In this document: in pieces, positions 33,460 to 62,435 of the stretch
How the letters are laid out: each line of letters opens with the position of its first letter
Position numbering within the stretch: the first letter of the stretch is position 1
NCBI GenBank assembly: GCA_037447605.1
Contig: CM074804.1
Coordinates: 1,550,001 to 1,614,000 of the forward strand
Length of the DNA stretch: 64,000 nucleotides
Source: Zygnema circumcarinatum SAG 698-1b
Taxonomy: Eukaryota; Plantae; Zygnematophyceae
Direction: 5' to 3'
Notes under the pieces: generated by a model
Told to the model about the DNA's origin: nothing
The model's input: the letters and a program-made list of their open reading frames with translations, nothing else
Database searches by the model: none
Program-made: the position numbers and the translations under genes

Positions 33460-33987
33460 CTACTTGATGGAGCACTTGGCTCCGGCAGCTTCCAGTTGCT
33501 TCTTTCCTTCCTCTGCGTCCTCCTTCGCCGCTGCTTCCTTCACCTTCTTGGGAAGGCCTTCAATCATATCCTTGGCCTCCTTCAGACCAAGGCCAGTCAA
33601 GGCTCTCACCACCTTGATAACAGCAATGCGGGCAGTGGAAGGAACGTCATCCAAAAATAGGTCAAATTCCGTCTGCTCTTCCACAACAGGGGCAGCTTCT
33701 GCAGCAGCTCCTGGAGCAGCAACCACTCCTCCCATAGGCATCATCGCCGCCGCTGAGACTCCCAACTCTTCCTGCAATCTGTCAGTCAATATTCTCGCCT
33801 GCTCCAAGGTCAGGCTCTTCACATCAGCAACAAGCTTGTCGAGGTCCACTGCGGTAGCAGACACCTTCACAACGGAGCGCCTTGCAACCTTTAGCCCTAC
33901 TGAGCGCTTAGTTGACGTGAAGGATGTGGACGATGCGGCGAGGCCTGCGGGGGCCCTGAGCGCCATGGACTGGGCAAGCGCCGCCAT
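33460..33987 (-). CDS. RPL12: Nuclear-encoded plastid 50S ribosomal protein L12 (bL12c) with transit peptide, intronless CDS, 175 aa
   Basis: ATG at 33987: [25 protein letters not shown] (Ser/Thr/Ala-rich transit peptide)...[22 protein letters not shown]...[49 protein letters not shown]...[18 protein letters not shown], the L7/L12 signature. Confidence 0.97.
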
Positions 33988-34165
33988 GTCTGCCGCTCGG
34001 TCTGTACTGGGGATGCGCCCTCTTTCTCTCCTGCAGCCGCACTGCAAAGGGTAGCGCCTGCGAGGGAGGGCGAGAGAGAGAGAGAGAAAGCACGCGCAAG
34101 CAATTGGCCGCCTTTCCTTCCGAACCCCTCTTCAGAGCTCGCAGGGTTCAACCAATGGCGGCACC

Positions 34166-34667: not shown

Positions 34668-35436
34668 ACTAACGGAAGGGCGAGTGGTTCACGGAAACAG
34701 TTCCAGTTAAAACTCCGTGAAACAAATGTACGCCCCTCCGTCAGGAGTTCAATTGCAGTTCCAGTTCGTGTGCACCCAAACTGTCACATGTGTCGTTCGT
34801 TTCGCTGTACAGTAAGCCCTCGATAAAGTGTGCCCCATGGCCATGGGACCAAAGGGTGGGCCCCACATTGAAAGTACTTTTTACCTACATTGCACCAATC
34901 ACAGCATGATGTGTCTCCAAGTCTCACACGTGGCAGACTGTTGTTGGCTGCCACACAAGAGGGGGCCTTCAATGGGCCCCATCACAACATACCTTTGAAA
35001 ATTTAAAGGTATAGCTAAGGTCCTTAACTTTATCGAGGATTACATCTGGTGGGTCTGCCATTTGCCCCTCACTGGACCCAGTTGTGCTAACACGGAAAGG
35101 GGAGCAACGCTTAACTGAGGCGACCCGTCACATGCACAGAGGTCTGCCGGCCAATGAGAGCAGCGCTTGTACCCTACAGCGCCTTACTATAACGAGGAGA
35201 AGTAAAGCTTCATAAAAGCCCTCTGATTGTCACTTTATAGAGGTTATCATTCCCTTTCCTATGTACATTTGATACTGTCGCCATCGTAAGACCCGTGTTA
35301 TTCCAACTTCTTTACTACACCATGTCCACAATAGGCTCCTTCCAACCCTCCAACCTAAGGACCCCCAAAACCCTAAAACCCACTTCGCTTTCCACAAATA
35401 TTCACATTTAAAGGCCGCCCAACAAAAAAAACATAC

Positions 35437-38400
35437 TTAATAATGCGCATTTCCAAGCTCTAAATCCGTTGCTGCGAACACCATAGAACCCATTCCGTTA
35501 TGTCCAACGGCTCCATGTAGCGACGACCCCCCCTCGTCCTCCCCCTCCTCCCACGCACTGCCAACTGACTCCGCGAACCTTTGAAGGGACTGGGAGACCT
35601 CCTCCTCCTCCTCCTCCCCCTGCCTGCTCCCCCTCCTCGACGAGGAGGCGAACTCGTATCTCGGGTGGCCCGAATCGCCACGCAGTTCTATGTACGAAAT
35701 CGGCCGAATATGCCAATCAAACGGACTCCCGGAACGCACGCGACGGGAATTCAGTGCATGGATCTCCTTCCTCGTCGCGCTGCCCGTCAAGTAGTCGCCC
35801 CATGAAAGCAGAATGCACCCCCTGCAGAAACACACCAACCCAGATTCAGAAAATTAGGGTTTCGATCTTCACGTCCATTAAAGTCCTGGGTTGAAGGCCC
35901 TCCTCTCCTCCCCCTACCCCTCCCCACTCTTCCCCCCTGTCCCTCCCTCCCTCCCCCCCTCCCCCCTGTAACCTCCCGATCTCCTCACCCTCCCTCTCTC
36001 CGTCTCCCTCTCCCCTTTCCCTCCCTCCTCCCTCCCTCTCTCTCTGAGGTAGGAGCGCTGACCAGCAGGCTGCACTGAGCAGGAGAATCGCAGAGAAGGC
36101 GATGGGAATCCAAATGTTTGGATTGAACTTGAGAAAGCTGAAAGTTTCCCAACCGAGCCAACACCCGTGGCAGCCATTGGACTCAGATATTGCGATAAAA
36201 ATGGGGCTCAAAACAATGCCTTTTCTTATAAAAAAACTAGATGATTTAAGCATCAAAACAAAGATAAAATGACCAGTTTAAGCGACTAAGAAAGGAACAA
36301 GCATCTTACGCCATGAAGGCCTGAAGGGGGAAAAAAAAAGTCACACCTGCACAAGTCGGCACCACCAATCTCAGATTCGGAGAACAAAATGGATTTCTGG
36401 GTTAATTGACAAAAAGGGAGAAAAGGGACGGCAGAAAAGTAAGGGAAAGGGAGGATGTCTACGGAGGGAGGGAGAGAGGATGGGGGAAGAGTGGGGGAGA
36501 GAGGGAGAGATGGAGAGAGAGTGAGGGAGAGAGCGAGAGGCAGCGTGCATACCCCACGAGAAGAGACGGAAGATCCATCGCCAGTCCCCTTCACATCTGG
36601 AATGTTCTACATGTCCCGCAATAAAAAGAACAGCGCGGAGGACCAAAAGAGAAAATAAAAATCAAAAGGGGATCACAAATGGGAACGAAACAACAGGAAA
36701 TTTCAGAGCTTCCTTATGTTCCCCTTACCTCCCCCACCCCCTTTCCGCTTTTTTTCTATGTCATTCCTTCCGTATATCCTCTGGGCTTTCAACGTTTATC
36801 CCTCTCTCTCTCCCAATCCCTCCCCCACTCCCTGTCTCTTCCTCTCAGCCTCTCCACCCCTCTTCCCCTGTCCCACCCTCCCCATCTTCCTCTCCCTCCC
36901 TATCCCCTCCCTCTCCCCTCCCTCCTCCCTCCCTCCTCCCTCCCTCATCCCTCCCTCCTCCCCCCTTCCTCTCCCCTTCCTCTCCCCTTCCTCCTCTCCC
37001 TCTCCCTCTCCCTCCCCCNNNNNNNNNNGGGAGAGGGAGAGGGAGTGGGAGAGGGAGAGGGAGAGGGAGAGGGTGAGGGAGAGGGAGAGGGAGGAGACAT
37101 GATACAGCAATGAGGATATAGGCGAGGATCTCTATTTGGAGATTGTTAAATATGACAAGAAGGGATTTATCAAAGAAGTTCTTTAACACTGCAAGAGAAA
37201 GGAAGACAGAGAGAGAGAGAATGGGGGGGAGTGGGGGAGAGAGAGAGGACATAGAGAGAAAGCTGTTTTACGATTCTGAAGACGGAAAGTTCAAAGTTCC
37301 CCTGAAACTGAAAAGACCATACACACTAAACCGCTCTATTGATGAATCCACTGACGTCAGTCGCTCGCCAACCCTTCAGTGCCCAGCAAAACGGATTTCC
37401 TATTTCCGGACGCATGTGAGTTCGTCAAATTTTGATATTTTTTTCTTTGCCCAATGTGACAACGTTTTTATTATATTGGTTTCTCTGCTCACCACAATGG
37501 CGTTGGAGATTGCGTAGGCGGTCACTAAGCCCTGCAGCCCAACCCGAGAACTTTCGCCTTCGATCAAACCATAGACACTCTTGTCTCCCTCTCTCTCCCC
37601 CTGGTGTCTCTCTCTCTCCTTTCCCCTCTCCCTCTCTTTCACTCTATCCCTCTCAATGTACAGTACCCCTCTCCACATCTGCCTCTCGCACTCTTCTCTG
37701 CTCTCCCTCCTCCCATTCCTCTACAAGTTTATGTCCTTCACCCCCCATTTCTCTCCTACCCTCCTTTATCCCTCACTTTATCGCTCTCCCTCACCTTCAC
37801 TTTCTCCCCTTCCCTTCTTCCCTCTCCTTGTCCCGTTCACTCTCCCTTTCCTCCTCGTTCTCTTCTCTCTTCTCCCTTCAGCTTTCTCTCTCTCTCTCTC
37901 TCTCTCACTCACCTCAAACTACTTAGTTTCTCACACAGCACCCACATCACCTCCTCCCCACCTTGCATAGAAACTCCTCAACACCATATAACGCAAGATT
38001 CCTTTCCTTCCGTACAGTGAACGACACCAACATGGAGAAAGCATAAAGTAACAAAAGACGAAAACAAAAAAGGACAAGAAAAAGTACAACAATCGAAGAA
38101 TTTTTTTGTTTTTTTAATTTAAATTGAAAATAGTACAGACATAGCCAAGAACATGGAGGTCACTTTAGGGTTTCAGAATTTTAGGGTTAAGGGCCCCTCA
38201 CCAAAGGAGGGGTCAGCCATGAATATGAGAATTCCACGGGTGCGGTCATAGTAAAGCCCGCGATGAGAGCTGCCAGCCAACTCATTGAACGCATGTGCTC
38301 CGCTTTCTCCTCCACCTCTCGTCTATTCACCTCCTTCAGCCTGAAGAAAGTTCAGGAATTAGAAGGAGAAGGGCCGTCTCTCTCTCCGCCTTTCTCTCTC

Positions 38401-39361
38401 TCACACTCTCTCTCGCCTCTCTCTATCCCTCTCTTTCTTTCTCTCATTGTTCTCTCTCTCTCTCCCGCTTCCGCCTGATTTACTTGTGCTCGGGAAAGGT
38501 CATGGGGAACGAAAAGGAAGCTCATAAGAGAGGGCAAAGCGAGTGCGAGAGAGAGAGAGGGGGGGAGAGAGAAGGGGGAGGAGAGAGCGATAAGGACGAA
38601 AGAAGAGGAAAGGGGGGAGAGCGAAAGAGAAAAAGAGAGAAGGACAGAGAGAGGATGGGCTGGAGGAGAGACAAGGCTACCACACCTTGTCCAAAGGTAT
38701 CTGAAGTTACCGAGATTCCGCTGTTGAACGTCTTCGTGCCTCCGTCTGTAAGTTACCAAAGATATCCCAAAACAAAAAACCAATCCAAAAATGTACCGAC
38801 ATTATTAGTCACAATAAACCGCACAAAGAGTTCGCCTGCAAGAGCACCTTACAGTTAGCACCTTGACGTTTAAAAAGAAAATGAATGGAATAATTAAAGC
38901 ATGCGCTACAAGTTCTACGCTTTCTTCTGAACGACGTATTTCATTTAAGCGCTCTCACAGCTCGAAACACTTGAAGCTTTGAAACATTTCTAGAAAAGAA
39001 CGCCTGCCCCGAAATGCTTGAGATGAGGGAGGGGAGAGAGAAACCCTATAACGCTTAACACCCTGAACCCTCCCCTACACCGCCTATAACCCTCGAAACC
39101 CTTCCCTGCGACCCTAAAACCCTCCAACCCTACGACCCTAAAACCCTGGAGCCCTAACCCCTCCAGCCCTGAACCCCGGCCCTCTGACCTCGTCCTGAGG
39201 CGGCGGTGGAGGCGCTGCTCGAGCGCCAGCTGGCGGAGGAGGGCGCGGTACTGGAGGTCCTCGTGGCGCCACGTGGCCCTCTCGTGGCGGAACTCGCGGC
39301 CGCGCTGGCGCCACTCGTGCGTCGTCCACGTGTCCACGGCCGTGAGGGCCGCCTGAGCCAT
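35437..39361 (-). CDS. ORAI: Orai (CRAC, calcium release-activated calcium channel) homolog, green-lineage type; central exons partly unresolved
   Basis: Supported exons: 39361-39189, 38745-38686 (RRHEDVQQRNLGNFRYLWTR), 38340-38202 (LKEVNRREVEEKAEHMRSMSWLAALIAGFTMTAPVEFSYSWLTPPL, TM1 with GF...E spacing identical to ORAI1 G98-F99...E106), 37531-37493 (GLVTAYAISNAIV, start of TM2), 36596-36553 (CEGDWRWIFRLFSWG, start of TM3), 36137-36063 (FLKFNPNIWIPIAFSAILLLSAACW, WVKF-like motif plus TM4), 35821-35437 (GCILLSWGDYLTGS...). The second half of TM2, the TM2-TM3 loop and mid-TM3 could not be spliced confidently; an N gap lies at 37019-37028. Confidence 0.88.
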
Positions 39362-39732
39362 GGCGGGCGGGCCCGGCCCGGGGGAACCCTAATTTCTGCA
39401 AACCCTAACTTTTCTCTGCGCACTTGCGAAGCCCCGTTTTTGCTTCCCTAAGAGAAATGACTAAGAGAAAAGAAAAGCGAGGGGGGATATGAGAAGTAAA
39501 ATACTTGCAAACCATCCTGCGTCACTTTGACATCCTCACTTCTGCATTGGTCCGAACCCTAATTTTCGCTTCATTCGTGAACTTTTCACGTAGCATTCCA
39601 AACTTGGACATACCTCACATGCCACACGGGGATCAGAGCGAAGCAGAAAAGCATGGCAATATTTCAACTGTACACGCTTACAGAGGAGACGAATAATACA
39701 ATGCAACTATTTTCGCGCAAGATGCAAAAGTG

Positions 39733-39854
39733 AGTGGGTGCGACACCCGGACTTCCCGGGAGGTCACCCATCTCAGTACTATTCCGGCCCACAGGCGCTT
39801 AGCTGCGGAGTTCTGATGGGATCCGGCGTAGTAGCCTAGGTATGATCGCACCAC
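39733..39854 (-). rRNA. 5S rRNA: 5S rRNA gene, dispersed single copy
   Basis: Minus strand reads GTGGTGCGATCATACCTAGGCTACTACGCCGGATCCCATCAGAACTCCGCAGCTAAGCGCCTGTGGGCCGGAATAGTACTGAGATGGGTGACCTCCCGGGAAGTCCGGGTGTCGCACCCACT. Box A/IE/box C are recognisable, compensatory pairing is kept (CCUAGGC/GCCUG-GG; CCGGA/UCCGG), and a TTTT terminator follows at 39729-39726. One A.C mismatch sits in the box-C helix. Confidence 0.93.
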
Positions 39855-41316: not shown

Positions 41317-43354
41317 TCAGTCCACAGCCGCCATGGCGCTCTCCCCCTCCCCCTCCTCCTCCATCCAGAGGTCCACTCTCAGCTGCAGTGCTCCGTGGGG
41401 GAAGTACAGGTCGGGCCGCGCTAAAACCTCACTCCATGGGCGGCGGAAGAGGTCTCTCGCACCCCACCCTACGGACTGGGGAGGGGAGAATGTGCAGCTC
41501 GACCGTGCCTTCGCAACTTCAAATTTGTGACCCTCTGCGGAGGTTTTCACACAGAAGCGATACTCGCAGTTGACTTCTCCCTCCGTCTCTCCTCTCGGGA
41601 ATGTGACTTGCTTTTCGAGGCGGAGGAAGAGGCCGAATCTCGACCCGCCTTCCTTTTGAAGTTCAAGTTTTGCGTTGAGAGTGAACCATTTTCCTTTCAC
41701 ACAGAAGGTGCCGGAGGTTGCCTGAAAGCCTGCATTGGGTTGCCACATCTTGCAGTAGCTTAAGGGAATGTCTAAGTATGCGGACTTCACAGCAGGACGA
41801 GAGTTTCTTCTCGGTCGGCACCATCCGAGGGAATTTGATCTCTGTACAGACATTCGGAACTCTTCTTCTTCTCCTCGGGCAGCCATGAATACAAGAGCTG
41901 AGAGAAGAAACTTTTGACTCGAGTCGGTCTCCATTTCCGGAGCAGTCATCACCGTTGACTTTATGTAAGCGGCCGACATCCAAGGGAGCCTTACATCTTC
42001 AAGAAGGTTTTCAACGATCGATTTCCGCAATTCTAAGTCTTGAAAATTGTGTCTCGCCCACGCTAAGAGTGCAGTAAAGACAATTTCTTCCGACTCAACA
42101 TCCAAGTTATCAGACTGAAGGAGCACTCGTAGACCCACTGTAGGGAGAGAGAGAAGTTCGTTAGAATCCGGTTGAGACAAAAGTGGGCCGTAATGCTCCG
42201 CCAAACATGTTCTCGACACGTGGCCGAGAGACCTCATCACAGGGAGGTCTTGAATGAGCTTAGGGAGCTCGAGAACACATAGAGCTTCTCGGGCAGTTAC
42301 ATGTGAGAGAGTGTCGTTTAACCGTTTAACGCATAGATCGAAGCACTCCTCCACTCCGAATCTATCAGCGAGCATTAGGAGTTGGAGAGTGAGCTCAAAG
42401 GATTCGGTTATATGGGGGGAGGTAGCGCCCTTATATATGAAGCGGAGGAGTTCCATCATGATCGGCTCCTCTGCAGGGGAGCAAGAAACCACAAGGAGGG
42501 CTCTTAGCAGCAGAAACAGAAGAAAAATGAAGGCTGGGTTTCGGTGTGATTATAGCGACGGAAGGGAGGGAAAAACTGCTTCGCACCACACTCCCTCTCC
42601 TTCTCCCTCCACTCTCTCCAGCTCTTGCCGCTGCTCTCTCCTCTCCGCGTCTCTGTCCCTCCATTGCTCCACTTCTCTTCTTGTTTCCCTCTTCCCCTCT
42701 CTCTCTCTCTCTCGCGCTTTCCCTTTATCTCCACCCTCGCCTGTTTTGTCTTGCTTTCCTTTCCTCCACCCCCTTTTCCACTGCACTCCCTCCTCTCATA
42801 TACATCCCTCCCCCACTCTCTCGCTCCCCCTCCCCTCTCTCTTCTCCCATCTGCCCTCAACCCCTGTCCTCTCGACTAAACCAGCCAAGCACCACCATCA
42901 CATCCTTTTCAAAGCTAAAAGGTCCCCTTGCAGTTTTGCTCCACCTTCGTCTCAGTTCTGTTTCAGTTTCCGTTCCAGTTCTCACCTTCCACTGTCAGAT
43001 GGATCGTGACGTTCGTCCTGTTCAGTGATTCGCTGAGACCGCTCGTGAAGAGCTTCAAGAAGAAGCTTGACTTGGCTGCCAGCACGACAGCTGTCACAGG
43101 GACCTGCTTCACTATGAGAGGAGGGGCCCCCTCCTTTCTCCCAACGACTTCACTTCTCGAGGAAAGGGAGGTGAGGGCGCTTGAGGGAGAGGGTCTGCTG
43201 GGAGGACTGTTCAAGGAAACACTCTCCTGCTCAGCTGCCTGGGAAGTGGATGAGGCTCCTTCTGCATATATCCCATCGTACTCATTAGCATCTGAGGAAG
43301 GGGTGGACAAGGGGGGCAGAGAGGAGAGCGAGAGAGAGGAGAGAGAGAGAGGGA

Positions 43355-44618: not shown

Positions 44619-44781
44619 GATGCAATTATTCGGATACGTGTAACGTGTGCCACTCTCGCTGGGGGCACAGCGCATTGCCCAGTGCATGCATGCCACATGG
44701 CAAGTAGCGAGCAGTCGTCAATGGGCGCACGCCAGCACAGCAAGGTTTTACGTTTATAAAATAATAAAAACAAGATGAGTG

Positions 44782-44879
44782 TACGCCGGATCCCATCAGA
44801 ACTCCGCAGCTAAACGCCTATGGGCCGGAATAGTACTGGGATGGGTGACCTCCTGGGAAGTCCAGCTGTCGCACCCACA
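44782..44879 (+). pseudogene. 5'-truncated 5S rRNA copy (pseudogene or 5S-derived element)
   Basis: tacgccggatcccatcagaactccgcagctaaacgcctatgggccggaatagtactgggatgggtgacctcctgggaagtccagctgtcgcacccac: lacks the first ~24 nt and has helix-breaking changes (ccagct vs ccgggt). About 55 bp of 3' flank is homologous to the flank of the 39.8 kb copy. Confidence 0.88.

Positions 44880-46892: not shown

Positions 46893-62435
<15,543 letters not shown>

Follow-up and report, generated by a model that had tools for sequence, protein, structure and literature searches.

Orai, the pore subunit of the calcium release-activated calcium (CRAC) channel in animals, is widespread in eukaryotes; it occurs in green algae and non-flowering plants and has been lost in angiosperms, and since STIM arose near the base of animals, green-lineage Orai is held to be gated otherwise (PMC7016017, PMC11085791, PMC8318260, PMC11894410). 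An earlier note on the DNA studied here had given the same background, with STIM not reported in this lineage, as is indeed stated in PMC7016017, PMC8318260 and PMC11894410. Here we describe an Orai-family gene of the zygnematophyte alga Zygnema circumcarinatum SAG 698-1b, which runs from position 39361 to position 35437, on the minus strand, of a 64-kb window (i.e., the whole stretch analyzed, 64,000 nucleotides of contig CM074804.1, assembly GCA_037447605.1). The gene is a further member of the already known green-lineage Orai; what is new is a nine-exon model backed by transcripts, a coding exon lost from the assembly, and a pore with Trp at position 91 and Thr at position 102 (W91/T102, human Orai1 numbering) that is found clade-wide. 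Taken as a whole, we consider it likely that the locus is a transcribed nine-exon gene for an Orai-family protein of approximately 379 residues, for which we propose a mode of opening other than by STIM.

Compared to animal Orai1 and Drosophila Orai (dOrai; CRAC pore subunits; PDB 4HKR, 6BBF, 7KR5), the algal gene shows the same Pfam domain (Orai-1), aligns at L95, G98, F99 and E106 (dOrai E178), has collinear transmembrane segments (TM) 2 to 4, and carries WGxYL at the place of the TM4 hinge (LVSHK region). It differs from animal Orai in having W for R91, T for V102, P at position 104 and one basic residue in the inner pore, as well as a very short TM3-TM4 outer loop (NPN). Further differences lie in the cytosolic N-terminal helix before TM1, which spans about 90 residues in the predicted structure of a full-length homologue (P0002) and would by position span about 65 here, in the lack of a helical or coiled-coil extension after TM4 in that same model, and in that no STIM is reported in the lineage.

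Among green-lineage Orai described earlier are, as cited in PMC8318260 and PMC7016017, those of Chlamydomonas (Cre01.g025000), Physcomitrella and Selaginella (Collins & Meyer 2011; Edel et al. 2017). These belong to the same family and present the same situation (i.e., Orai present, STIM not found, alternative gating proposed), to which the present gene adds a further species; the Orai of Selaginella, Sphagnum, Diphasiastrum and Psilotum has both the motif set and the W/T/E pore in common with it. A related pore is known from human Orai1, where R91W dewets and closes the pore and V102A rescues it, giving a non-selective current (PMC7034092). This R91W/V102A channel likewise pairs an inner-pore Trp ring with an outer-gate residue of lower hydrophobicity, but it is engineered, STIM1-requiring and non-selective, whereas the algal pair is natural, has Thr rather than Ala, and is conserved.

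Gene model, transcription and family membership

The locus holds a genuine Orai-family gene, which is transcribed and whose transcripts are correctly spliced. Sequence contigs were available from four public runs (X1 to X4) representing three studies; that these are RNA runs is a guess, and the contigs were taken as transcripts because DNA would still carry the introns. Spliced contigs from all four runs match the exons in the window with zero mismatches and skip positions 36138-36309, 37531-38200, 38340-38684 and 38746-39188, i.e., segments that end in CT..AC on the plus strand and thus in GT..AG on the strand of the gene. Besides joint 38339/38685, the corresponding joints 38745/39189, 37530/38201 and 36137/36310 were found, these three in each of the four runs.

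Family membership was assessed exon by exon, with P0002 standing in for the joined protein in tests of family and fold. In an exon-wise Pfam scan, exon 3 by itself scored 38.4 bits (E 1.3e-9) against the Orai-1 model (PF07856; cut-off 25 bits), which bears out the Orai domain expected in the earlier note, here on a single exon rather than on the complementary DNA. No Pfam match was found for any exon other than exon 3, each of them being too short, and the remaining exons were therefore searched with a family profile, built from 29 relatives and used to search the entire 64 kb in six-frame translation. Seven of the exons in the window were matched in order and on one strand, exon 4 only weakly (E 0.81), while exon 7, at 37 nt, is below the length that the profile can score; no other match with E below about 0.5 was found in the six frames of the 64 kb. 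When the family profile was searched against the PDB, only Orai chains were retrieved (E 7e-14), with TM1 and TM2 aligned. Moreover, full-length homologues cover positions 3-172 of the 173 positions of Pfam Orai-1 (E 1e-30 to 1e-41).

The 46 residues of exon 3 align with TM1 of Drosophila Orai in the PDB, and the Glu of ...APVEF aligns with the selectivity-filter Glu of dOrai ...AMVEV (E178, equivalent to human E106), as the earlier note had proposed. All groups of motifs listed in that note (RYLWTR..NRREVEEK, CEGDWR..F..F.WG, FLKF, WGDYLT) are likewise present, in exons 2, 3, 6, 8 and 9 on the minus strand; of these, (R)CEGDWRWIFRLFSWG is found at 36596-36553. Its four-TM architecture can be read only in part from the window, which holds TM1, TM3, TM4 and, in exon 4 (37531-37493), the opening 13 residues of TM2, while the remainder of TM2 falls in an unassembled exon; four TM helices are modeled in P0002. 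In the AlphaFold2 (AF2) model of this homologue, a helix of about 110 residues leads into TM1 and is followed by three more TM helices and a disordered tail. In a Foldseek search of the model against the PDB, nearly all of the top rows were Orai chains; they occupied ranks 1-7 and 10, and most had target TM-scores between 0.50 and 0.72.

The features of the gene, in transcript order, are as follows (positions in the window).

39362..39500, minus strand: 5' untranslated region (UTR), with contigs from four runs on 39189-39500 (zero mismatches) that run on upstream of 39500.
39189..39361, minus strand: exon 1, coding part, 173 nt, starting at the ATG (MAQAALTAVDTW...); charged, W/R-rich N-terminal helix; joint 38745/39189 in four runs; family profile positions 5-63 (41.5 bits, E 1.6e-11).
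38686..38745, minus strand: exon 2, 60 nt, ...RRHEDVQQRNLGNFRYLWT(R), carrying RYLWT(R); joints 38745/39189 and 38339/38685; family profile positions 62-84 (E 7.4e-5).
38202..38340, minus strand: exon 3, 139 nt, (L)KEVNRREVEEK and the pore helix TM1 with ...APVEF; Pfam Orai-1, 38.4 bits; family profile positions 83-126 (82 bits, E 7.8e-24).
37493..37531, minus strand: exon 4, 39 nt, GLVTAYAISNAIV, start of TM2; joint 37530/38201 in four runs; family profile positions 129-148 (weak).
37019..37028, no strand assigned: assembly gap and place of exon 5, about 188 nt; remainder of TM2 and TM2-TM3 loop.
36553..36596, minus strand: exon 6, 44 nt, (R)CEGDWRWIFRLFSW(G), start of TM3; contigs on 36551-36599; family profile positions 206-223 (E 4.5e-5); splice-site context.
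36310..36346, minus strand: exon 7, 37 nt, (G)VTFFFPLQAFM(A), middle of TM3; joint 36137/36310 in four runs; splice sites; 35 nt of X1 record 1 align; tblastn match to Closterium AGITFFFPLLATMA.
36063..36137, minus strand: exon 8, 75 nt, FLKFNPNIWIPIAFSAILLLSAAC(W), including FLKF; end of TM3, very short outer loop and start of TM4; contigs on 36062-36137; family profile positions 232-261 (E 6e-4).
35437..35821, minus strand: exon 9, coding part, 385 nt including the TAA at 35439-35437; end of TM4, WGDYLT, PFDWHIRP motif and acidic tail; contigs on 35300-35820; family profile positions 261-357 (E 1.9e-6).
35300..35436, minus strand: 3' UTR, with contigs that run on below 35300.

The start of exon 1 agrees with that of the Closterium, Sphagnum and lycophyte homologues, and the last exon showed no domain by Pfam. 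The shared N-terminus MAQAxLTAxDTW, taken with the identical exon layout, suggests kinship with Closterium. Two 5S rRNA genes were also observed, at 39735-39853 (minus strand; 100.9 bits) and 44757-44874 (plus strand; 59.2 bits), the first of which shares its strand with the Orai gene and precedes the start codon of the latter by approx. 370 nt. If colinear, X1 record 1 and X2 record 10 run 303 nt past 39500 and would start within this 5S gene.

Pore residues across the streptophyte clade

Exon 3, used as the query of a full search, retrieved 30 proteins. The closest full-length relative, P0002, is transcript-derived, has 384 residues and is 85% identical over exon 3, with Closterium proteins following next; the protein encoded in the window itself was absent from the matches of the exon 3 and P0002 searches, none of which was approximately 100% identical to the window. 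Other relatives, retrieved by a word search with P0002 and by cluster look-up, come from several Closterium strains, Spirogloea muscicola, Chara braunii, Sphagnum, Selaginella, Diphasiastrum, Psilotum and the chlorophyte Chromochloris. The gene belongs to a streptophyte clade that is also represented in Closterium, Spirogloea, moss, lycophytes and a fern. Its exon layout recurs in the Closterium orthologue, down to a 39-nt exon 4 with identical boundaries. Within Closterium, two further observations were made, i.e., that introns of the Closterium sp. NIES-64 locus (L001 4885-5426 and 5776-6210) hold the TM1 exon region in three tandem copies and the 39-nt exon 4 in two, and that several database proteins of the Orai family look mispredicted, containing translations of low-complexity introns.

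The pore helix (38232-38279, minus strand) carries W91, L95, G98, F99, T102, P104 and E106. In the inner pore, R83 is replaced by Ala and R91 by Trp, while the position of K87 holds Arg, the sole basic residue there. As compared to the canonical gate and basic pore, F99 is thus kept, V102 is changed to Thr and the basic cluster is reduced, a variant that is common to the whole streptophyte clade. Across the 29 relatives, F99 is invariant and the filter Glu is present in 26; W91 was found in 14 and T102 in 15, the clade comprising this gene, Closterium, Spirogloea, moss, lycophytes and fern. A second clade of 13 sequences shows N91 together with V102 and includes a second paralogue from Closterium, whose filter Glu is replaced by Gln. 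When scored with the profile of the clade, chains of the dOrai K163W mutant exceeded the wild type (54.6 vs 50.5 bits), since the clade itself carries Trp at that position.

Trp at the R91 position is the residue found in a human immunodeficiency. Because this residue closes human Orai1, conduction and selectivity of the algal channel cannot be assumed, and by analogy with R91W/V102A the channel may conduct cations with lower selectivity than CRAC. One could go further and suppose that the protein has an Orai-like fold but does not conduct or resides in endomembranes, as proposed for the Orai-derived animal proteins Jiraiya/TMEM221, or that it is a poorly selective cation leak. The closing effect of Trp in human Orai1, the reduction of the inner-pore basic cluster to one residue, and the Gln that replaces the filter Glu in the sister clade of the same algae (P0050, P0009) would all fit such a protein. 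However, the clade of this gene has retained the filter Glu together with F99, L95 and G98 from algae to ferns, which argues for a conserved pore function, and T102 belongs to the type of substitution by which the gate of R91W channels becomes wetted again. Weighing both sides, we regard a protein other than a plasma-membrane Ca2+ entry channel as unlikely, although it is the best placed of the alternatives considered here.

Opening of the channel in a lineage without reported STIM

We infer the oligomer, the conduction, the selectivity and the gating route of the algal channel from its relatives. Homology with Drosophila and human Orai suggests a ring of subunits in which a cation pore would be lined by the TM1 helices and would carry, at its outer mouth, a ring of Glu residues (the E106 equivalent). 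In the AF2 model of P0002, the tail after TM4 has pLDDT values below 50 and no long helix. As the STIM-binding tail of animal Orai is thus not evident and STIM is reported absent in the green lineage, opening would depend on something else.

Outside the pore, the invariant residues cluster on the cytosolic face, i.e., NRRxVEExxE before TM1, GKxxVxE after TM2 and PPxPxRxFxxxWxxRCExxW before TM3, and the homologue alignment shows a PFxWH motif after TM4. The most likely candidates for gating would be such cytosolic elements conserved in the green lineage: (i) the long W/R/E-rich helix that is predicted to be continuous with TM1 (NRRxVEEKxE), (ii) the TM2-TM3 loop (GKxxVxExxEEEF ... PPAPRRTF), and (iii) the C-terminal PFxWH motif. 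Tentatively, then, and with somewhat less than even confidence, we suggest that in the streptophyte clade, from zygnematophytes to ferns, a natural W91 is offset by the polar T102 and that, together with cytosolic motifs specific to the green lineage (a W/R-rich N-terminal helix, an EEEF loop and a PFxWH tail), this would yield a channel that opens independently of STIM, follows a gating logic of its own and is probably less selective.

Several points weigh against the overall reading of the locus given here. Replacing R91 by Trp causes loss of function in human Orai1; the remainder of TM2 and the loop of this gene are known by length and frame alone; the Foldseek matches have weak E-values (about 0.01) and were obtained with a model of the homologue P0002, a protein other than that of this gene; and no functional data on any green-lineage Orai, including streptophyte Orai, were found in the searchable literature.

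A different possibility is that the system is truly store-operated, with a divergent sensor of Ca2+ in the endoplasmic reticulum (ER), either an analogue or a very remote homologue of STIM, gating this Orai at contacts between ER and plasma membrane. A survey of 216 eukaryotes, which included the streptophyte alga Chara, places the origin of STIM near animals (PMC7016017), and the homologue model lacks a helical STIM-binding extension after TM4; we thus consider a store-operated system quite improbable. For the alga studied here, the absence of STIM rests on the literature (PMC7016017, PMC8318260, PMC11894410). Of the interpretation offered in the earlier note, an intact and expressed streptophyte Orai-family gene with the pore Glu stands, while STIM-independent gating is not a new proposal, having already been published for green-lineage Orai.

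The exon in the assembly gap

The gene is intact in the organism, and the assembly is without one of its coding exons. Between exons 4 and 6, the letters that flank the gap at 37019-37028 are discontinuous. On the X1 contig (record 1, 1943 nt), exon 4 ends at position 853 and the next piece (36599-36551) begins at position 1039, leaving 185 nt that align nowhere in the window; X2 record 4 and X3 record 12 (375 nt = 76 + 35 + 49 + 185 + 30) likewise show 185 nt between 37493 and 36599, so that an unplaced insert of the same length is present in three studies. Conversely, profile positions of about 149-205, which represent the remainder of TM2 and the TM2-TM3 loop, had no counterpart in the 64 kb, whether searched by tblastn with five homologues or with the family profile.

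The orthologous locus of Closterium sp. NIES-64 (L001) has a 39-nt exon that ends in ...GTG/gtgag and is followed by one exon of 215 nt, which encodes exactly the missing stretch and ends in ...CAG/gt; the next exon starts with A TGC GAG. In the alga studied here, the contigs align three letters too far (CAG, 36599-36597; the canonical acceptor is at 36597) which a missing exon with the same ending as in Closterium explains. By this comparison, CAG is the most likely end of that exon and 188 nt its most likely length, i.e., the 185 unaligned nucleotides plus three. Exons 1 to 4 total 411 nt (phase 0), and the addition of 188 nt leaves two bases that are completed by the first base of exon 6 (AG/A, Arg, followed by CEGDW). 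The full coding sequence thereby comes to 1140 nt or 379 residues, as compared to 322-384 residues in the closest homologues. The exon for the remainder of TM2 and the loop (about 62 codons) must therefore lie in the gap at 37019-37028. The gene is thus neither untranscribed nor frameshifted, the two failings that the earlier note had set against its own reading, as spliced contigs occur in four runs and the length of the missing exon keeps the frame. That the gene is instead a broken gene or pseudogene, with the TM2/loop exon truly deleted from the genome, is very hard to credit: neither tblastn nor the family profile found a trace of that exon in the window, but contigs of three studies match all exons in the window with zero mismatches, the additional 185 nt sit at exactly that junction with a frame-keeping length, and the assembly gap falls within that very interval.

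The gap forms the center of a pair of inverted low-complexity sequences (92/92 nt, CT-rich and GA-rich), which is a likely place for an assembly break. One unspliced contig of low depth (X4 record 20) agrees with the window between 36570 and 36846, after which it continues with 21 nt unlike the window; the CT-rich stretch beside the gap (36846-37018) may itself be misassembled. In several introns of the gene, a CT-rich tract precedes a GA-rich one on the same strand (e.g., 38360-38480 and 38540-38660; 36700-37018 and 37029-37100), and the two tracts of such an inverted pair could anneal in the pre-mRNA. The stretch 37106-37188 (NFFDKSLLVIFNNLQIEILAYILIA) was considered as an exon and rejected; its phases do not fit, its depth in the main X1 transcript is 0, and it is covered by low-depth unspliced contigs only.

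Elsewhere in the window, large open frames on the minus strand at 33460-34047, 41317-42492 and 60510-62435 resemble, as judged by eye, neighboring genes for chloroplast ribosomal protein L7/L12-like, BTB/POZ-type and JmjC/PHD (KDM5-like) proteins, respectively.

With one exon lost, an annotation based on the genome only would yield a truncated or wrongly joined protein. The transcript-backed model given here adds to the family a gene from a close algal relative of the land plants. The W91/T102 pore variant found in it is characteristic of a clade and not a one-off. For the question of how Orai was opened before STIM existed, the Orai of the green lineage represent natural test cases.

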